From contig JANKJI020000002.1 in assembly GCA_024626585.2 (NCBI GenBank), positions 247,889,332 to 247,915,602 of the forward strand: a stretch of DNA of 26,271 nucleotides, written 5' to 3'. Positions 10,253 through 26,271 of this stretch are shown here, one piece after another. The position numbers and the translations under genes are program-made. Position 1 is the first letter of the stretch. Each line of letters opens with the position of its first letter. The notes below the pieces were generated by a model, which saw only the letters and a program-made list of their open reading frames with translations, did not search any database and was not told where the DNA came from. The stretch is from Ginkgo biloba. Its lineage: Eukaryota; Plantae; Ginkgophyta.

Positions 10253-11699
10253 GTGCTTGTGAAAGAATTTGAATAAGAGAGTTTAATTTTTGACTTGAAA
10301 TGGTTATTTTGGCAATAAAATTGGGCTAAAATGGCTTAAAATAAACAATTGTTTATGAGTAGTGGTACCGAAGAACTTATGACTTGACAAATATTTAGTT
10401 ATCCATGAAAAAATGCATGAAAAATGCAAAAAAAAACTTTCTGGAATGAACTGTGTGAATTAACAAAAAATTAACACTCAACATAAAAATATAAACTTTT
10501 TGTTAGTAGGCAAAAAATTAACTTGACAAAGATTCTTATGAGAAAATGATGGAAAATTATTGATAATAAGTGACGAAATTTTATAAATGTTTAGACTTTG
10601 TGAAAAAAATAAAAATAAAAATAAAAACTACCATGTGTCTTCTATCGCTCGAATTACAAGTGATTTCAAACACTATCAATCAAATATCTTCAAAGTTGAT
10701 GGATTCACTATTCTTCATCCACTAGTAGCTCAAATTCAAAGTCCCCCTTTCAAAATCATGATTTTATAATAAAAAAATATGCTTCTTTTCACTCCTAGCA
10801 GTGGTCCTTGCACATCGCTCAAGCTTCTTGGGAATGTCTCCCCATCGGTGGCTCTATGGTTCTGTAGAGATATGAGACTAACCCACTACCAAATCATGAC
10901 CCATTTGAAGTTGTGCACCCTTCGTATACGTTTTGTGCACCATTGAGTAGAGATAACAATGCCAAGTCTCAATCACCTATTCAATACACCATCGCTTATG
11001 CAATAGTGATGTGTCATGCCTTCATTAGTTAAGCACTATACATCAATCATATTTAAGTGTCTCACATTTTGTATNNNNNNNNNNNNNNNNNNNNNNNNNN
11101 NNNNNNNNNNNNNNNNNNNNNNNNNNNNNNNNNNNNNNNNNNNNNNNNNNNNNNNNNNNNNNNNNNNNNNNNNNGAAGAAAGTCCTTTGATAACAACAAC
11201 TTCGATTAGATCAACTACAATTCCTAACGACCCATTGAAAAGTAGTCATAACAATGCATAACCCAAAAGGAAGTGCAGGATATGCAAATAAGCCCCATGG
11301 ACAAGTGTATGATATTTTGTCCTTGTGTTTACATACAATTTGAATTTGATTATAGGTTGAAAAAACGTCAAGGAAAAAATTACTTCTTACCTGTATATTT
11401 ATCCAACACTTGATCAACAAATGTTAACAAAAAGTGATCCTTACATGTAACTTTATTCAACAACAAATCCACACATTCATTACTTGCCACCTTTCTTTGG
11501 GACTACCACCAATGGAGACACCCATGACTATTAGATATGGGGTAAATCATTCCAATTGATAGCAATTTTTCTAATTCGCCTTTGGCGATTTGCATCATCA
11601 TTATATTAAGTCTCCTTTATGGTTGCCAAATAGGTTTAACATTATCCTTTGTAAAGATGCAATGTTGACAAATTGAAGATCAATTCCCTTCAAATTTGT

Positions 11700-12985
11700 A
11701 TGATTCTAAGCAAAAGCTCCTTTCTGTTTACTCAAAATATGAAAGAATCAGTTTCCTTCATTGCCTATGACACTGATGCCAATAAAAAGTGTTTTGTTGT
11801 CTCATAACAAAATGCATGACATGTAGCAACATGACTAACATAGTTTGTTGATTTTTTTGCTAAAATAAGATAACCAAATCTAACTAAGGAGTGGATTATC
11901 TATCTTGCAATAACTCGTAGTGTTCAACATCTTCATCCCCTTCTTTAAAAGAAGCAAGAACATCCATGGCCATCGTTTCATACATGTGTTCTTCCTCATC
12001 TACATTCCAATTGGAAGTGAAGAAATGGTAACTATCAGTCTCTTAATCAGACGATTCCTCAGATTCAATCCATTCTACTTGTTCATTAGATGATGTCTTT
12101 GTTGCTTGGGCAACGATTATAAAAGCACTTTTGCTTAGTATCATGAGCAATGGCCATTTTCTCAGTTGAACATGCATTTGCAACATCTGAAGTAGCAAGC
12201 TAGGGGTGTCCAAGGATACTGGGATATCCTTCAAGATCCTTTTTAGGTTGTAGCACTACAAAATTAGGTCGATACACGTAATTGGCAATTGAAANNNNNN
12301 NNNNNNNNNNNNNNNNNNNNNNNNNNNNNNNNNNNNNNNNNNNNNNNNNNNNNNNNNNNNNNNNNNNNNNNNNNNNNNNNNNNNNNNNNNNNNNTAATCA
12401 AAAGTTCCTGTGTGTTTGTTCAAAATATGAAATGCTTGCTTCCATACATTGTTTGTGAGATTGCTGCTAATAAAAAGTGTTTTGTTGTCTCCCATAGTAA
12501 GAGGCATGACATCTAGTTGAGTGACTAACACAAGGTGTTGATTTCTCTACTGAAATGAAAGCACCAAATATGACTGTAGAGTGGATACTCCACTTTGTAG
12601 TAGCTCACAGAGTTTAGCATCCTCACCCCCTTCACTGAAAGAAGTAAGCACATCCATGGCCATCATTTGATACATGTGTTCTTCCTCGTCTGCATTCCTA
12701 TAGGAGGTGAGGAAATGGTAACCATCACTATCTCCATGTGATTCCTCTTTAGACTCAATCCATTAGGCTTGTTCATTAGATGATGCCTTCACTAGTTGAG
12801 CAACCTTAAATAGAGTTAAGTACATTTGCTTAGTACCATGAACAATGGCCATTTTTTCGATTCGACACGTAGTCACATCTACGATAGCAAGCTAAGGGCA
12901 TCCAAGGAAAACGCGATATCCTTCAAGATCCTTTTTAGGTTGCAATGCTACAAAATTACTCAGGTATTACAAGTTGGCAATTGAA
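11700..12985 (-). repeat. Two diverged copies (~11700-12294 and ~12395-12985) of the same protease-RT linker, flanking a 100-N gap
   Basis: Shared blocks AATAAAAAGTGTTTTGTTGTCTC, CATCCATGGCCATC, TACATGTGTTCTTCCTC and GATATCCTTCAAGATCCTTTTTAGGTTG at an offset of ~690 bp, with many substitutions between the blocks. Confidence 0.9.
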
Positions 12986-14411
12986 ATCAAATATTATCCA
13001 ACGTCCCTTCTGGGTGGATAATGGATCTATCAGCAATTGTGAAACAATATGAGTTTTTCAAAGGACATACAAACCCAATGTTTTCTTTGTTGTGACTATC
13101 GTCATCTTCATCATTGCTCCTAGATCAATAAGCACTTTGAGAAGTGTGATAGTGCCAATGGAAATATCTACCAAAGGAGTTCCTGGATCACCACATTTTT
13201 TTACAAGTTCCTTACCAAGCAAAACATCAGATGTGGCTCCTACAACTTTGATTCAAGCTAGGGCTTTCTTTTGTTTCTTCCCCCTTTGTGTAAAGCTCCC
13301 TGATCTGCTACACATATATGGGTCTGTCCTTCATAGATTGAGTCAATGGAATGTGAATGAAAACGTTCTGCAATTCATCAGAAAAATTGGAATGATGATC
13401 CATTTTTGGTTCTTAGGGTTTCCTCGAACGTTGAGGAAAAGGCACAATGGTTTCTATTTGAGGAGGGGTTGACTTAGGGATGGAGAAAGAATCATATTAA
13501 TGATCAAGGGAATCATGATGTTCCTCAATCATACCATTTCTTTTTTTGAGTGGTTGTTGAGGTGGGGTCCTTAAATGAGTTTTCCTTAACAACCTAAGGT
13601 CACTCCGACACAAGAGGGAGAAATAGTTTCATTTGAGAAATTATTGGATGTTGGAAGAGTTGGCCATTCTAAGGTTTGATTGATATCAATAGAATAGGTG
13701 GCATATTGTTGTTTCATGTTTCCTACAAGGTTGGGGATAAGTTGCGCAGGTAGTGAAAAAGGAAGAGCCTTATTTACAGGTTGAGTAGTATCTAGTTGGG
13801 CAGATCGAATAAGCTAGGGCCCTAGAAGTGGTAAGAACTGGGGATGAATGATTGGTCGAGGAAACATACGTTGATTGCTTGGGTTTAATAATGGTTATGT
13901 TTCATAGGAGTGAAATCAATAATTATCAAGCCTAGATTGTTTGGGATGATACTGAGTTTGCATAGGGAAGGGTGGTCAGTAGGATGGGTTGAAATCCAAA
14001 CTACTACATAGATTATATTGAAAGAAATCATTCAGTGCCCTAAAATTGTAATGATACATACCAGGGGAATAGTTGGGTTGTAAAAATTGTGAATGTGGTT
14101 CATAATCCTATATTGACAACATTTATTCTCAATAGCGTTGGTTCTACATTCCCCTCCTATTCTGCATCTGTGTAGCATAAGTGTACAAACACATCTTCAC
14201 CCCCTTTTAGAGCAGCCTTGAGATCCTTATGCACTGGACAATTCTTTTCATCGTGATGTTCCTTGCAAATTTTGCATTGTACATGGAATGCATCAAAACA
14301 CTTGTTAATCGAATGTTTGTCTAAATTTTGGACAAAAATAGGCAAGGGTGTCAATGTGGCCAAATCTAGTTTCTTGTTATTCAACTGCAAGTTCGTTAAT
14401 TGTCTTGCCAT

Positions 14412-14504
14412 AGTCGGGGAGGCCCGAGAGACGGTGGTTTACCCCGTGGCAGATGTCAGCAATTCAAGTCCACTTATCTCCAGCCCGTGATCCTAGCCGA
14501 TACA
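14412..14504 (+). other. NUPT: plastid trnA-UGC group II intron 3' end, exon 2 and start of the trnA-rrn23 spacer
   Basis: AGTCGGGGAGGCCCGAGAGACGGTGGTTTACCCCGTGGCAGATGTCAGCAATTCAAGTCCACTTATCTCCAGCCCGTGATCCTAGCCGATACA matches the plastid rRNA-operon sequence as I recall it. It is a GC-rich island that interrupts the gag frame and has AT on both sides. Confidence 0.88.
14448..14482 (+). pseudogene. trnA-UGC: Decayed plastid tRNA-Ala(UGC) exon 2 (35 nt)
   Basis: GGCAGATGTCAGCAATTCAAGTCCACTTATCTCCA versus recalled plastid GGCGGATGTCAGCGGTTCGAGTCCGCTTATCTCCA: five differences, all G>A. Confidence 0.85.
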
Positions 14505-15334
14505 ATGGAAGACTATATCTCTTCTTTGAGGTCAACAAAGAGATTGCTTCGCTCAACATTATTTAGTCCTCCCAATGCTTGCCTTATTCGACTTAAGATT
14601 AACAGGAGGAAATGTAACAATTTTTGTTAATGCTCTTCCATCGCATTTCTTGGATGCTTATTAATACTGTAAGCAAAGCTCTTTGATTTTTTAGAATGAT
14701 ACATACTTCTCCTACAAACATTAAGTTAAACCACATTCAAACTCTAGGATTCATCTGCATCCAAACTCTAGGATTCATCCCAGCCAAAAACACTATCTTC
14801 AAATGGGATTTCTTCATGGACATGTTTTGGGCATTATCTGATGAGGTGATCCATGCTTTTGAGATAATCTTCAAGAAATCATTATTCTTCTTGCTTTAGG
14901 CACAGAATTTCTTTACAGAAATTTGTGGCTTGACAATATTCTTGATATTTTATGAGAAGAATTTTGAACATTTGCTCCCATGTGTTGATGGATCCCCTTA
15001 CAAGCTCATAGACCAACGTAATGCAACTCCTTTCAAGATTGATGGAAAAAGCTTCAACATATGGGCCTTTGTGAGGCAATCATAACTTTGATAGAGAACA
15101 TCAAATTTAAATAAAAAGACATCTAGATCCTCTCAACTTCTACCCCAAAACTACATAAGAGTAGCTAGTGCATTTGCAGTGATTGCAATTGGAAAAATGA
15201 TTGTCCTGATTTTGTTATTGAGAGGTTCCTCATTATCATTTCTTATTGCTACCATTTATTTCGTGATGATTTTAATGTCCTTTGACACACCTTTCTATTC
15301 TATTAAATTACCACAATCTAGTGATGGTATCACC

Positions 15335-18076: not shown

Positions 18077-18208
18077 TCAAGTATTGAATCCAGCACGCCG
18101 CCTTCTTGTTGCATTAGAAATAACTACTTGGCCTAGTTTGTCAACCTCGACTGGAAGTGTCCGCTCATTAACAGGAGCATAGTGACGAAACCATGCACCA
18201 GTGTACCA
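18077..18208 (-). CDS. CSY: Citrate synthase last coding exon [43 protein letters not shown]
   Basis: TTTTACAG acceptor and TGA stop. Matches the plant peroxisomal CS C-terminus YTGxWLRHY...DKLGQV..SNA.RRR.AG. Confidence 0.95.
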
Positions 18209-21200
18209 CTGTAAAATAAAATAGAACAAAGACAATTAAGACATTTGCATATACACCTGAACACATACAAGGCATAAATAAATGAAGAAATCTATCTTTT
18301 GAACCTGTTGTGGCCTCATAANNNNNNNNNNNNNNNNNNNNNNNNNNNNNNNNNNNNNNNNNNNNNNNNNNNNNNNNNNNNNNNNNNNNNNNNNNNNNNN
18401 NNNNNNNNNNNNNNNNNNNNNATATAAATGGGTAAGAGTTTATGCTATTGTTGATCCCATCGTAAATATAATATATTAAATGTCATATTAGAATGCAGAA
18501 ATTCAACCTTGGCAACTTGCATAGACTCTTTCGTGGAATCTTCCTTTGACTTAATCTGTTTTCTAAATGAAACATCTTAAACGTATGGTTAAAATTTTTA
18601 TGTTTGTTTAATATTCAGTTATTTTGTTATATTAAGACTTTTTCGTGATATTATAATTTCACACAACCCTTCCCACAGTCATTCGAACCCAATCTGTTTC
18701 TTGATCTTGTTTGCCTAATTCATTTCAAACTCGTAGAGAAGTCAATCATTTTGCCCTTACCTCGCCATTGTTTTTCCAGCATTCAATCCCATTCCATTTT
18801 GTTGAAAACTCGGCAACATCTTCAAATTCAGGACACACTAATGATAGTGAGAATGCATTTGAGGGAATTGCAGCAGTTCATCTATTCACAAGTGCCTCTC
18901 AATTACCCACCCTCTCTAACGGTCCCTACGATGTATTTATCAACCACCGTGGAAAAGATGTCAAAAAATCACTGGCCAGCAGTATCTATCATACTCTCGA
19001 ACTTTGTGGAGTGCGTGCATTTCTGGATTCAGAGGAACTGCAACACGGAGATTTCATACCTGCAAATATACAAGAGGCTATTCGCTTTGCTTCAGTCCAT
19101 ATTGCCATTTTTTCAGAGAACTATGCAGAATCGCCTTGGTGTTTGGAAGAGCTTTCTCTCATGTTGAAAACGGGGGGAAAGATAATTCCAGTGTTTTACC
19201 ATGTTAAGCCTTGTGCACTTCGCTACAATGAAAAAGGAGTGTACGCTCATGCCTTTGCCCAACATGAAGAGAAGGGGAGATATCCCTCAAAAAAGCTCTC
19301 AGAATGGAAAGGAGCGCTTAACAATGTTTCATTTCGATCTGGTTTCGAACTCAACGAGTTTAATGAGTAATAGATACTTCATTCACACTCCTTAATTTAA
19401 TTTATGTTTTTACATCAGTGTTTCTTTAAAGCTGGTTTTGTTTATATTTTGTACTGCACACACCTGATTTGATATTTTTCTTCACAAAGAGTTTTTTTTG
19501 GGCTTGTAATTGATATCAGCGACCAGGGAAGGTTGTTGAAGGGTATCATCAGCAATATACTAAAAGAGGTGAAAAGGGTGCCATTGGAGGTCGTCTAACA
19601 CCCTGTTGGTCTGGATGAAAGAGTAGAAGATTTCGAAAATAAAATAGCGGATTATTCTGTGATGCAGAGTGGGAATGTTAAAATTATGGGGATTGTAGGG
19701 ATGGGTGGATCTGGTAAAACCACTCTGGCAAAAGAGCTTTTTAACAGGAAGCGTTCTGCATATGACCGATCGAGTTTTTTGTCTGATGTGAGAGATGCAT
19801 CAGCCAAAAATGAGTTACAAAGATTGCAGAGACAACTGTTAAAAGATCTGGCGTGCATTGACTGTGAAATCAACAGCACAAGTGAAGGAAAAGGGATTAT
19901 CAGAGCTCGTCTGAATTATACTGAGATTCTTCTTGTTTTAGATGATATCGATCATGAGGATCAAATAGATTCTTTCATAGCCAGGGATGTACTGATCAGA
20001 TCTGATAGTAGTTTGATTATAGTGACTACCCGTGACAAGGGTATGTTAAGGCGCTCAGAAATCACAATGATGTATGAGGTAAAAGGACTTGATGCAAAGC
20101 ACGCCAGAGAGCTATTTTGTTGGCATGCGTTCCTTGAATCCCTTCCTCTCATTGGATTCGAAGGTTTGGTCGAGGAGTTCTTGAGTGTGGCAAATGGTTT
20201 GCCTTTGTCATTGAAAGTCTTTGGCGGGCATGTCTATGGAAACCATGACACAGATTACTGGGAAGCCGAACTTAAAAAGATCTCCAGGATATTGCCCAAC
20301 GACATAATAAGCATACTAAAAATAAGCTACGATGCTTTGGACGAGGAGGAAAAACAGATGTTTCTAGACATAGCTTGTTTCCTCATAGGCCACGATAAAA
20401 ACAAGGGCATCCGCATATGGAATGGATCAGGGTGGAGCGGTTCGCACAGTCTTCAAACCCTAGAGTACAAGTGCCTTGTCGAAATAGGTGATGAAAACTG
20501 TCTGAAAATGCACGACCATCTTCGGGATTTGGGACGAAACATTGCAGATCAAGCATGCGTTACACATTCAAATCTGGATCCGTGTCGTCTTTGGCGTTCA
20601 GAGCAAGGGACTAAATTTCTAAAGGGACAAATGGTATAATAATTAGCTTCCATCCTCTGATTTTATTGACATTGAGAGGTTTCTGTTTACTTTCTGTGAC
20701 TCAATTAAGGTTTAATTATATTTATTTCATAAATTTTATATTTTTAGAAAATAAAACATGTTCAAGGAGTTGTGGCCAAGGGGCATCAAGGTGAACCTTC
20801 CAAATGGTATGGAAGAATACCGTTGTTGGGAAGTTGTTTAAACAATCTTATAGATTCTAGCATTGGATTAAAACTTCTTGATGTCGGGAGTGATCATCAT
20901 GTGAAAAGAAAGTTATCACAAGATCTTCTATGGCTTCACTGGAGTGATTGTTCACACAGAAGCATTTAGTGGCTTTCATTGAAAAATTTGCGAGTTTTAG
21001 AACTGGATGGAGTGAATACCCAAAAGTTGTGGCATGATGCGCAGGTACCTTGTTTCTTGGGTTTTAGAACTGAATGCCATTTTACGCCATTCATCTATTA
21101 ATTGAGTTTAAAATTAAGGTTAATTATTATAACCATAAAAAAATGAAAATTGCTTGCAGGCTCCTTTACAGTTGAGAGAGCTGAAGATTTTCATGAAGTA

Positions 21201-24200
21201 TAAATGCAAGCCTGCAAACTTTCCACGATCAATACAGTTTCTCAAACATTTGGAAAAGATAGTCTTGAAGCATTGGAGGGGCAACAGTTTGCCAGAAGAG
21301 TTTTGTGGCCTACAATCTTTAAGGCATCTGACACTAGATAGGTGTTCTAAGCTGAGATCACTGCCAAAGCGTTTCGATGATCTGACAAACCTCCAATATT
21401 TACGTCTTGAAAACTGCTATGCATTAGTAATTTCGCAGTCATTCAATCAATTAACACAGCTTCAATATCTTGATTTAAGTTACAGCCGGAAAATCCAATT
21501 CCAACCAGACATTTTAGGAATAAAAGTTACAACGCTCGAGGAATTGAGCGTCCCACAGTGCTCCACATTCCCGCAAGAGTCCCTTATGCAAATCACACGC
21601 CAGGCGTCTCTAAGAAAGCTAGATTTACTTGGTGACTTTTATTTTAAACAAATGCCAGATGAGTTTTGGAGCCTTACTAACTTACAAGTTCTGAAGATTA
21701 GGAGTGCTTCCTTGGTCAGCTTGCCGCCTTCCCTCGGCAATCTGATACGCTTGACATACCTTCAACTGGAGTCCTGCACAAAACTGAAATGCTTGCCTGA
21801 ATCTTTAGGACAGTTGAAACAATTAACACATTTAATTATATCTGGTTCAGGAATTGAATATCTACCCACAATGTCTCATCTCCAACACATAACTCTAAGC
21901 CAGTCAAAACTACAAATCCTATCTATTTCTGGGGATGATTGTCCCAACCTTGAAACCCTCACCCTTTCAAACAATGAATGCTTAGAAGAGGTGGAAACCT
22001 TACCGCCATCCTTAGTGAAGCTGAATTTAAGGGGCTGCATAATACTGAAGAGAATATCGGGTACCTTTAGTCTGTCAAAGCTTCAAGAGTTGGACATAAG
22101 TGGCTGTCGTGAGCTAAAAGAGCTGCCAAGTGTGGTGCACTTGATTTCCTTGGGAACACTTGAAGCGATGGATTGTTGGAAGCTGCAGCGCATAGAAGGT
22201 CTGGAGCACCTGCAAAGATTACAATTTTTGTTCATTTCAGCAGACAAAGCAGTCATTTGGAATTGGATGCGGACACAGGTAATCAAACTTGCTCTTTGCT
22301 GTTTGTGCCAAACGATATAAATGTCTAGCTAATTTGAAGAGTCTGTAGCGGTGTCAGTCTATCGATAATTTCGTGGTAAAATTGCAGAGATTGCCGTTTA
22401 TATCGACTATAATTTTCAGAGGAAGGTCAGTACGTGGGAACGGTGTCCGTGTTGTGGAGTCGATTCTAAATTCCTTCAGCTTTGATTATAAGCCGGTTTG
22501 GTCCGCAGTTATCGTATGCAGTGCAATAGATATTATTGCCACCCGTGATTGGAAATACCGTCCTGATCTTCTCTGTTATTTGCCAAGACCATTCGATGAA
22601 ACTACCGAACATGGAGAATGGATACAGATAAGTATCATCCGGCCCAATTCTATGTTCAGATCCCGATTTAGAGTCAAGGATCAAATAGATAGGATGAGAA
22701 GAGCCCCCAAAAAATATCAAATAAAATAGGAAAAACATTAAAGGAGAAACTAGTTATAAAATAAGGATGAAGTTGAGGCATTATGTTATTATAAATAATT
22801 TGATAGACAAACACAGACACTATAAAGTATAAGTAACTCACTCAAATTTATGCCTCACATATACACCTTTTAAACATGGATTTCATATAGGTTATCATGA
22901 TAAGTTAACTCTTAGAAAGTTTCTTGCAAAAATAGTGCATCCATATGAAACAAACCCTCCAACTCACCTCTTCTGACCACACTACAACAACCTAAGCAAA
23001 ATTTATGAACACCTTTGGATAAGAACTAGCCACACAAGAAATTCCATAAGGTCAATAGAAGGAAACCATCACTTTGAAGGTTCAAAAAGTTCATCTTTAC
23101 ACAAGAACTAGCTGCTCAAGACCTCTATTGGTTTGATGGAATTAAGCGCTCACTAAAATAGTTAAAAAAGAGATCTGCTGGGACATACCTTGCCCAGCAC
23201 ACGTACAATCTGCTTGTCACGAACTGTCTTTGAATTGTAAAGATCCTGACCCTGTGAAAGAACTAGCCAGTTGTCAGTTCTGAAGCACACATATTCTCAA
23301 AGATAATTAAAAAACCCTCAAAAAATCCTAAATGCGGCAGGAAAAATCTTGCATCATTACAGTGCAAATTATTAGAAATAAACACAATCAATATTCAAAC
23401 ATAAGATTTAGGCACTGAGTCTTGGCTTGAGAATGGCAGAATAAATCAAGTTAAAAATAAATTGGGTAAGTCACATTGCTACCAAAAGAAAATAACTGAA
23501 TTAAAAAATGTGTGCATTATCTTTTGATGAGGAAGGTTTTGTCAGTCATTAGAGTCAAACACATTTGAACATTGGCTTGAAAAAGAACAGAGCAGTGTTT
23601 TCCCCCCCTCTATGGTAGCTTCAACTCTTATGTATAGTCATGAAGTATGAGCAAGCATCCCACCCACCCTCAAAAAAAAAAAAAAAACAGGGGGAGNNNN
23701 NNNNNNNNNNNNNNNNNNNNNNNNNNNNNNNNNNNNNNNNNNNNNNNNNNNNNNNNNNNNNNNNNNNNNNNNNNNNNNNNNNNNNNNNNNNNNNNNNNNN
23801 NNNNNNNNNNNNNNNNNNNNNNNNNNNNNNNNNNNNNNNNNNNNNNNNNNNNNNNNNNNNNNNNNNNNNNNNNNNNNNNNNNNNNNNNNNNNNNNNNNNN
23901 NNNNNNNNNNNNNNNNNNNNNNNNNNNNNNNNNNNNNNNNNNNNNNNNNNNNNNNNNNNNNNNNNNNNNNNNNNNNNNNNNNNNNNNNNNNNNNNNNNNN
24001 NNNNNNNNNNNNNNNNNNNNNNNNNNNNNNNNNNNNNNNNNNNNNNNNNNNNNNNNNNNNNNNNNNNNNNNNNNNNNNNNNNNNNNNNNNNNNNNNNNNN
24101 NNNNNNNNNNNNNNNNNNNNNNNNNNNNNNNNNNNNNNNNNNNNNNNNNNNNNNNNNNNNNNNNNNNNNNNNNNNNNNNNNNNNNNNNNNNNNNNNNNNN

Positions 24201-25426
24201 NNNNNNNNNNNNNNNNNCCCTCTTAAAACAAACATGAATCTAGGTGAACTGACTTGTTGGTGGGAAGCCAGTTAATCAAAATTTCTACGGAAAGGAGGTA
24301 AATCTGCCACATACAATCAACTCTGGTATGGTAGATTCTAGAAGAGATGATAACATCAATTTCCTAAATTAAAAGATTCCTCGAATTTTCTTTTGAATCA
24401 GAATGCTACTAGTTTCAATTAAACCACGAATATGAACAAACCTAAGTTCCCTACAAAGCTTCCACATATGGAATGGGTGCCGGAAAATAATAACCATAAA
24501 ACAGCTATGAAAAGGAAAATTTGGAAGGTGAAATGGCATACCCTCAATGCTGGATTAGCATCTGGATGAAATGTTGATAGTGCACTTATTGTACTAACCA
24601 GCATACCCATTGGGTGACCATCATGGGGCATTGCTGCTATAACAGCCTGCAAAAGCCAAAACCAAAAATCCATACTTGGCATCAACTATATACATTACAT
24701 CAATGCTACTCAGTGAACGAAAAATTCAAAAGAAGAATGAATACTAAAAATATGTAGTGATTTAATTAAAAATTATTGTTCACTATAGAGTGAAAAAGTA
24801 ACAAAGAAATAATATTCAATTTGCAGGCAACAATAGTGTCTCAGATTAACACAACAATAGTATGTAGGTCTGACATAATACAATACATACAGATTTGATT
24901 CAGAATTCCACTTAAGTTGTTGGACAAAAGAAAAGGTCAGGTTCAGATTATGATAGAGAAGAAAGGGGAACATACCAAAAGTCCCTCAGGCACTGCTGAG
25001 TGTTGAGAGACTGCAAATTCCCAATCTGTCAGCTGAGTTTCAGAGGGCAGATTCCCATACACTGAAATATACAAAGGAGGTAATTTAATAAGGAACTTAA
25101 AAACAAGCAGTCATTCTTCATTCATTTATAGTGTGTCAAGTTCATAATTTTCGGTCATTGTTACAGAAGTAAACTGTGACAGGATTATCATCCCATTTCA
25201 GCAATCATACCCCAATACAAATACAACAAAGAAAAAAAAGCACTTACGTAAAAGGTAAGCCACCTCAAGGTAGGTGCTTTTCTCAGCCAACTCCTCAATT
25301 GGATAGCCTCTATNNNNNNNNNNNNNNNNNNNNNNNNNNNNNNNNNNNNNNNNNNNNNNNNNNNNNNNNATTCAGATATCCTGGATCATAGAGCTTCAGT
25401 CCTTTGTCTTGGCCTCCGGTGGTTAA
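18077..25426 (-). CDS. CSY: Peroxisomal/glyoxysomal citrate synthase, spliced and partial (5' exon(s) presumably beyond the window; central exons not visible)
   Basis: Six exons in correct order with GT-AG borders and compatible phases: 25426-25248, 25061-24976, 24646-24542, 23251-23189, 18321-18305 (partial) and 18208-18077. They match Arabidopsis CSY2/CSY3-type sequence from recall and contain no internal stops. Confidence 0.95.
18305..18321 (-). CDS. CSY: Citrate synthase penultimate exon, 3' end only: (I)MRPQQ
   Basis: TTATGAGGCCACAACAG|GT, truncated by the 100-N gap. A 96-nt intron separates it from the last exon. Confidence 0.88.
18322..18421. other. Exactly-100-N gap, probably an unknown-size placeholder; others at 1822, 8213, 9807, 11075, 12295 and 17066
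   Basis: Exactly 100 N, cutting through a CSY exon. Confidence 0.9.
18422..18809 (+). promoter_or_regulatory. Putative TNL promoter/5' leader with W-boxes
   Basis: TTGACT at 18546-18551, AGTCAA at 18740-18745 and GACTTTT at ~18636. These motifs are short and could be chance. Confidence 0.35.
18810..19366 (+). pseudogene. TNL exon 1: N-terminal leader plus TIR domain
   Basis: [35 protein letters not shown] (catalytic Glu retained), [10 protein letters not shown]. Donor GA|GTAATA. Confidence 0.92.
19520..20633 (+). pseudogene. TNL exon 2: NB-ARC, with a premature stop near its start
   Basis: PLEVV*HPVGLD, P-loop GMGGSGKTT, kinase-2 [38 protein letters not shown]. Confidence 0.95.
20748..21044 (+). 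pseudogene. TNL exon 3: NB-LRR linker and first LRRs, with an in-frame TAG
   Basis: ..[37 protein letters not shown]|GT. Confidence 0.88.
21160..22278 (+). pseudogene. TNL exon 4: LRR array (open, 373 codons)
   Basis: Starts APLQLREL, with repeated LxxLxLxxCxxLxxLP. Confidence 0.95.
22388..22729 (+). pseudogene. TNL exon 5: post-LRR C-terminal domain, possibly 3'-truncated
   Basis: TTGCAG acceptor. [27 protein letters not shown], then a shift to A-rich sequence. Confidence 0.75.
23189..23251 (-). CDS. CSY: Citrate synthase exon [21 protein letters not shown]
   Basis: TTCACAG acceptor and GTATGT donor. 63 nt. Confidence 0.95.
24542..24646 (-). CDS. CSY: Citrate synthase exon [35 protein letters not shown]
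   Basis: TTGCAG acceptor and GTATG donor. 105 nt; contains the HPM motif. Confidence 0.95.
24976..25061 (-). CDS. CSY: Citrate synthase exon (L)[28 protein letters not shown]
   Basis: TTTCAG acceptor and GTATG donor. 86 nt; phase matches the previous exon (C|TG). Confidence 0.95.
25248..25426 (-). CDS. CSY: Citrate synthase exon [19 protein letters not shown]-[gap][22 protein letters not shown]
   Basis: TCACAG acceptor and GTAAGT donor. The 56-N gap sits where ~58 nt (TAPVRSSICYIDGDEGILR-like) is expected. Confidence 0.93.
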
Positions 25427-26271
25427 CTGTGATAAAAATATCATATTCATTTAACATTATTACAACTAAGGTTCAAATATTCAAGAACACATATTATGTA
25501 GGCAAAATCATAGACAGGGTGGGTTTGATCTAACAGTTTGCAGGTAGGACATGAACAAGCTGTCACAGGTTCAAGCCACATGGAGNNNNNNNNNNNNNNN
25601 NNNNNNNNNNNNNNNNNNNNNNNNNNNNNNNNNNNNNNNNNNNNNNNNNNNNNNNNNNNNNNNNNNNNNNNNCTTTCCAACAAGATTTGTTAACAGGAAA
25701 ACAGGTCAACCACATGATTGGTATCCTAGGAGAAAAGTAACATAGTAGTGTACCTTTTTGTACTGTTGATCATTAGCAAGGGTATCTTCCTTCTATGCCA
25801 AAAGAGTCTGATCTATGATTGGATTGGGCATTAAAGGTTCAAGGTTTCAGCCTCTCAAGGTTTGCAATCTATTTTTACTATTGAAATTATACAATATAAG
25901 GTAGCCCTTATGTATTTTGAAGAAGGACAAGGGTCAGTTCTCACTGGCAGATAAATTAAGGTAAAATGAGACAGGGTCTTTTGCCACTTCACACTGAGTT
26001 GTGTTAGCGATTCTGTTAAGCTTCACTCAAAATAAAATTGACTAAACGGTTCAAATTTTGAGGGTATCTTAAGAAACTGATTTTGCACTGCTATAATTAA
26101 CTTTATAGAATACATGTAATCTAGTTTGTGCACAGATTGCAGCCCTAATAAAGGCTGAGACAGACATTCTAAGCATACAGCAACATGATATAGGCCCGCT
26201 TCACACTCTAACTTTAGCTCTGTTGAAGTAGCTTGCAAAGTTCTTTAAGAAATCATCATGACACAAACAAT

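Follow-up and report, generated by a model that had tools for sequence, protein, structure and literature searches.

In animals, the known nested genes number in the hundreds (PMC3325483). In Ginkgo biloba, introns average 7,884 bp, 12.45% of them exceed 20 kb, and repeats account for 65% of intron length (PMC5118899). Ginkgo also carries 585 nucleotide-binding leucine-rich repeat (NLR) loci, 221 of them TIR-NB-ARC-LRR (TNL) loci, and NLR pseudogenes are to be expected in gymnosperms (PMC11171428). Here, we describe a stretch of 26,271 nucleotides of Ginkgo DNA (the window; positions are 1-based and refer to its whole length) in which a TNL copy on the plus strand adjoins exons of a predicted peroxisomal citrate synthase gene (CSY) on the minus strand. 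As in known nested genes and pseudogenes, gene-derived sequence with its own exon-intron structure stands antisense in, or adjoining, an intron of an unrelated host. The locus differs from nested genes in two respects: the guest is a predicted pseudogene, and the 3′ host exons are linked to it only through an unsequenced gap. We find that the TNL copy is, to judge from its sequence, disabled and of DNA-level origin, and that it probably lies within a CSY intron. Both gene models were examined exon by exon.

The TNL copy retains the architecture of gymnosperm TNLs. It has the same domain order as proteins named “TMV resistance protein N-like” or “Roq1-like” in Cryptomeria japonica and Taxus chinensis and as Ginkgo Gb_40547 and Gb_02462, and it shares conserved motifs and intron positions with them. 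Its parts are the following.

18422-18797, plus strand: upstream DNA, AT-rich, about 380 bp, reaching the contig end
18798-22729, plus strand: whole TNL copy (TIR-NB-ARC-LRR), five exons and four GT-AG introns, about 1,140 codons
18798-19366, plus strand: exon 1, TIR domain; the frame is open from 18705
19367-19519, plus strand: intron 1, 153 nt, GT..AG, phase 2
19520-20633, plus strand: exon 2, linker, NB-ARC and winged helix
20634-20747, plus strand: intron 2, 114 nt, GT..AG, phase 0
20748-21044, plus strand: exon 3, first LRRs
21045-21159, plus strand: intron 3, 115 nt, GT..AG, phase 0
21160-22278, plus strand: exon 4, LRR region, 373 codons, open
22279-22387, plus strand: intron 4, with its acceptor AG at 22347-22348 (70 nt) or 22386-22387 (109 nt)
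22388-22729, plus strand: exon 5, C-terminal region, ending in a TAG stop at 22727-22729

Both candidate acceptors of intron 4 preserve the reading frame. Pfam matches comprise TIR (PF01582, E 4.6e-29), NB-ARC (PF00931, E 4.7e-25), the Roq1-type winged helix WHD_ROQ1 (PF23282, E 2e-9) and LRR_14 (PF23598, E 3.3e-25), with LRR_4 and LRR_8 at about 1e-21. Exon 2 retains intact P-loop, kinase 2, GLPL and MHD motifs, and the context of the TIR catalytic glutamate (..SPWCLEEL..) is likewise intact. Exon 5 has no Pfam match at E<=0.05, so neither a C-JID nor any other known C-terminal domain was detected there; a post-LRR C-JID domain is common in TNLs but not universal. The closest relatives found, from Cryptomeria, Taxus, Pinus and Ginkgo itself (Gb_40547 and Gb_02462), are 45-58% identical over the NB-ARC. 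With the NB-ARC exon as query, no identical gene model and no paralogue above 58% identity was found among proteins of 190-605 amino acids.

Three disabling lesions nevertheless set the copy apart from these gymnosperm TNLs and mark it as a predicted pseudogene. First, no ATG occurs in frame from the stop at 18702-18704 up to the TIR domain; ten gymnosperm homologues have their start codons at positions aligning to 18798-18822, and the window has codons for F, N or S there. Second, an in-frame TAA at 19596-19598, in the linker VAKHPVGL, aligns to a Lys in nine of ten gymnosperm TNLs and to an Asn in the other. Third, the first LRR exon is interrupted in frame by a TAG at 20967-20969, at a residue that is Pro or Ser in homologues (SLP[PS]WL). 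With the start codon lost and two nonsense codons at conserved positions, no receptor could be made, and the pseudogene is presumably without function. The preliminary description of this DNA was right that a TNL is present, with real TIR, NB-ARC and LRR domains, but the copy is not a working receptor gene.

These lesions also bear on whether the TNL copy could influence its neighbor. It had been proposed that defence induction could be coupled to CSY. On this reading, the TNL would work from within its host intron, and its induction, its antisense transcripts or small RNAs derived from the NLR would be tied to CSY expression. The antisense orientation close to a CSY exon, the intact NB-ARC and TIR motifs and the retained upstream DNA speak for such a receptor. 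Set against them are the missing start codon and the two nonsense codons, which leave the coupling with no basis in the sequence; moreover, nested genes are usually expressed independently of their hosts (PMC3325483). We therefore regard a working TNL coupled to CSY as highly improbable. It is also conceivable that the pseudogene is still transcribed from its own upstream DNA and, being antisense within the CSY transcription unit, gives rise to double-stranded RNA or NLR-type phased small RNAs that dampen CSY (fatty-acid respiration) under defence. This small-RNA idea is unlikely, and we give it slightly less credence still.

The inactivation looks fairly recent, since the introns and domain motifs are intact and there are no frameshifts in the TNL copy. 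If about 4% of random changes make stops, two nonsense changes in about 3.4 kb suggest, roughly, 1.5% neutral divergence. At the Ginkgo rate of 2.2e-9 per site per year (PMC5118899), this rough reckoning would make the pseudogene a few million years old.

The TNL copy is non-processed and arose at the DNA level, as the preliminary description proposed, since it still has introns where TNLs usually have them. All four introns named there are present, each with GT-AG borders, and the roughly 400 bp of upstream sequence proves to be about 380 bp before a gap. Retrocopies are likewise non-functional gene copies at a new place; the TNL copy differs from them by its four retained introns, which exclude retroposition and a processed pseudogene. 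No poly(A) tail or flanking repeats were seen around it. A search for direct, inverted and tandem repeats around the TNL copy gave no marks of a transposon or of target-site duplication, and the left border may lie in the gap.

The host gene is, as far as sequence comparison goes, a peroxisomal citrate synthase (of the PTS2, or peroxisomal targeting signal type 2, kind and GltA-like) annotated as Gb_06688. A 35-residue CSY exon used as query returned full-length plant citrate synthases from a representative library; one of these, P0035, led by word search to Gb_06688 (EukProt, 538 amino acids). The “Gb” prefix is that of Ginkgo gene identifiers (Guan et al. 2016, PMC5118899). A literature search found no mention of Gb_06688 by name. 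The CSY exons in the window are listed in the order of transcription, with residue numbers from Gb_06688.

25370-25426, minus strand: exon piece, residues 81-99, with an AG acceptor at 25427-25428; it runs into a 56-N gap
25248-25311, minus strand: exon piece, residues 120-141, followed by a GTAAGT donor
24976-25061, minus strand: exon, residues 141-169, AG/GT borders
24542-24646, minus strand: exon, residues 170-204, AG/GT borders
23189-23251, minus strand: exon ending ..RVLGK, residues 205-225, AG/GTATGT borders, on the TNL contig
18304-18321, minus strand: tail of the penultimate exon (..MRPQQ), residues 491-495, with a GT donor
18077-18208, minus strand: last exon, residues 496-538 and the TGA stop

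All of these pieces match Gb_06688 at 100% within their splice borders (172 residues in total), and every visible exon border is a canonical AG/GT. This full identity, together with the “Gb” prefix, places the window in Ginkgo biloba. Comparison with a CSY protein, which the preliminary description had suggested, thus aligns the exons in the correct order. Coverage in the window is limited to residues 81-99, 120-225 and 491-538; for residues 1-80 and 226-489, the window yielded only chance words (tblastn at E<=10 and an exact 5-mer scan). The missing block of 264 residues, 226-489, is the catalytic core (His/His/Asp), which Gb_06688 has. Gb_06688 carries the citrate synthase family PF00285, for which one window exon alone scores just E 0.0083.

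Gb_06688 is 72-82% identical to land-plant proteins named as peroxisomal or glyoxysomal citrate synthases (the Arabidopsis CSY2/CSY3 type). The locus described here differs from plant peroxisomal CSY in that the N-terminus and the catalytic core lie outside the window. Near its N-terminus, Gb_06688 has RLAVVSGHL, which we take to be a PTS2-like motif; that region, within residues 1-80, is not in the window. After ..NYDPRAK, at about residues 379-407, the Gb_06688 model (P0184) also has an insertion of 29 residues that none of the other plant CSYs seen shares. The gene predictor has probably left an intron in place here, and an apparent retained intron suggests that the DNA from which Gb_06688 was predicted was genomic and did include the core exons. 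The existence of the complete model likewise implies that core exons exist in the genome. No other Ginkgo CSY protein was found in a search with Gb_06688 limited to proteins of 296-941 amino acids.

The TNL copy is physically linked to CSY. It shares one ungapped contig of 5,275 bp with the ..RVLGK exon, on the opposite strand and tail to tail. The preliminary description had put the 3′ end of the TNL about 460 bp from that exon with no gap between, and this is borne out.

22730-23188: spacer from the TNL stop to the ..RVLGK exon, 459 bp, no N; the start of a CSY intron

CSY is transcribed from the ..RVLGK exon into the TNL copy, and there is no CSY exon in the 4.77 kb between the ..RVLGK exon and the contig end. 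If the ..RVLGK exon belongs to an intact CSY, the TNL copy must therefore lie in the next intron, regardless of how the scaffold is joined. Measurable CSY introns are short, at about 90-1,300 nt, which makes this intron, at 4.77 kb or more, an outlier. The contig linkage, the identities and anatomy of the two models and the lesions can be read directly from the DNA; the nesting itself we infer, by way of hidden exons that would sit in a gap. Three gaps touch CSY.

18322-18421: 100 N, a placeholder length, real size unknown; it cuts the penultimate CSY exon
23697-24217: 521 N, within a CSY intron; no CSY residue is lost
25314-25369: 56 N, within CSY coding sequence; it hides residues 100-119

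The order and orientation of the CSY exons are correct across all three. At 23697-24217, the flanking exons (residues 170-204 and 205-225) are consecutive, so order and orientation are consistent there and no coding sequence is hidden. Residues 100-119 need 60 nt and the flanks of the gap at 25314-25369 are only 58 nt apart; its stated length is thus wrong by about 2 nt, and no reading frame can be followed through it. The flanks of the gap at 18322-18421 are discontinuous, with the tail of a CSY exon below and AT-rich non-coding DNA on the other side. Since the contig end at 18321 interrupts an exon, this gap must hide at least the remainder of the penultimate CSY exon and, provided that the join is correct, all of residues 226-489.

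The cut exon also disposes of a simpler idea, that the TNL copy deleted the CSY core. We reject this, because a contig end within an exon means that sequence was left unassembled, and not that it was shown to be deleted.

We think it more probable than not that the TNL copy is truly nested in the CSY intron after ..RVLGK. An intact host is indicated by perfect exons with canonical splice sites and full identity to the one full-length Ginkgo CSY model that was found, and by 3′ exons that adjoin in the right order and orientation. The upstream host exon is contiguous with the TNL copy; the 3′ host exons, in contrast, are reached only across the 100-N join that hides 264 residues. The earlier statement that CSY exons flank the TNL on both sides therefore holds for their order and their minus-strand orientation, and for the 3′ side only across a gap of unknown size that conceals half of CSY. 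Similarly, antisense nesting in CSY stands to the extent that both genes share a contig and that an intronic position is the most likely one; the host exons are not continuous on the 3′ side, and the core is absent.

Several features of the assembly weigh against nesting. The window sequence is a short-read draft, from a genome for which a Hi-C update of the draft assembly has been published (PMC6744486). It contains 16 N runs, seven of exactly 100 N (starting at 1822, 8213, 9806, 11075, 12295, 17066 and 18322, all within 18 kb) and nine of estimated sizes of 18-521 N, and the gap-free pieces between them are 0.2-5.3 kb each. Because fixed 100-N joins link such very small contigs, of only 1-6 kb, local contig order and orientation are weakly supported; the 3′ CSY exons themselves sit on a contig of 1.2 kb attached solely by one of these joins. 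The core exons are present in Gb_06688 but not in the window, which may mean that the annotated locus is another copy or one that was assembled better. Two contig breaks, at 18321 and at 25314-25369, fall within conserved exons of CSY, and short-read (de Bruijn) assemblers presumably break where near-identical copies diverge. In the 2016 Ginkgo assembly, 308 of 707 complete BUSCOs were duplicated (PMC5118899), a level of duplication that makes redundant or partial copies plausible.

These observations are what one would expect if the TNL copy were not nested. The CSY pieces would then come from an incomplete or redundant version of the locus (a haplotig, a segmental duplicate, or one whose core was replaced by TNL-bearing DNA), or the 1.2-kb contig with the 3′ exons would be misplaced. 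The TNL pseudogene would merely abut a CSY fragment, and the working Gb_06688 would lie elsewhere or be differently built. The absence of residues 226-489 from the window, when a genome-derived model has them, fits such a fragment. On the other hand, the CSY pieces that are present are uninterrupted, completely identical to Gb_06688 and bordered by canonical splice sites, and they keep the correct order and orientation across three gaps. No second Ginkgo CSY protein came to light within the limits of the search, and the break at 18321 is one of assembly. We consider the absence of nesting a distinct but lesser possibility.

Nesting of the pseudogene in the CSY intron, the reading that we prefer, would be accounted for as follows. 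A TNL duplicate would have landed in, or been carried into, a CSY intron at the DNA level. The copy would then have decayed, losing its start codon and gaining two nonsense codons. It would now be transcribed only passively, as an antisense intron of the CSY pre-mRNA, and be spliced out, while the remaining CSY exons (residues 226-489) would lie in or beyond the join at 18322-18421. The TNL copy is most likely inert.

The rest of the window holds probable remnants of other elements. At 786-1139, on the minus strand, a 118-amino-acid open frame matches the viral movement protein family PF01107 (E 8.3e-6, 26 bits against a cut-off of 23) and probably belongs, as a fragment, to an endogenous caulimovirid-like element. 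Decayed, retroelement-like open frames occupy about 11000-15100 on the minus strand, including a piece resembling a CCHC knuckle at 14160-14438 and words resembling reverse transcriptase at 11214-11423 (minus strand). None of these frames has a Pfam match at E<=0.04. Two similar segment copies, at 12046-12255 and 12550-12762, flank a 100-N gap. Rfam gave no match in the window.

The locus calls for some caution in annotation. Some pipelines discard fully nested gene models (PMC7642918), and it had been expected that automated annotation would miss or split the host gene. This did not happen: the full-length Gb_06688 model exists, and its exons are identical to those in the window. Here, a gene predictor would instead splice from the ..RVLGK exon straight to the last exon, in frame, giving a “citrate synthase” without its core. 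Motif-based tools, for their part, would count the dead TNL as an NLR locus.

A model of this kind is seen in an Adiantum fern (P0050; GCA_022343405.2), where a gene spanning 33 kb encodes a 238-amino-acid protein in which the CSY ..RILGK exon is joined directly to the last exon (YTG..). The catalytic core is passed over in just the way expected of a predictor run on the Ginkgo window. The N-terminus of P0050 has no similarity to citrate synthase, and the upstream neighbor gene encodes a reverse transcriptase/RNase H. Either an annotation artefact or a truncated copy could account for P0050.

Given the long introns of Ginkgo, the finding is an ordinary one, and its biological weight is small. 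It adds a further case of gene-derived debris within long introns, here those of a gymnosperm whose genome measures 10 Gb, and a further locus to the several hundred NLR loci of Ginkgo.

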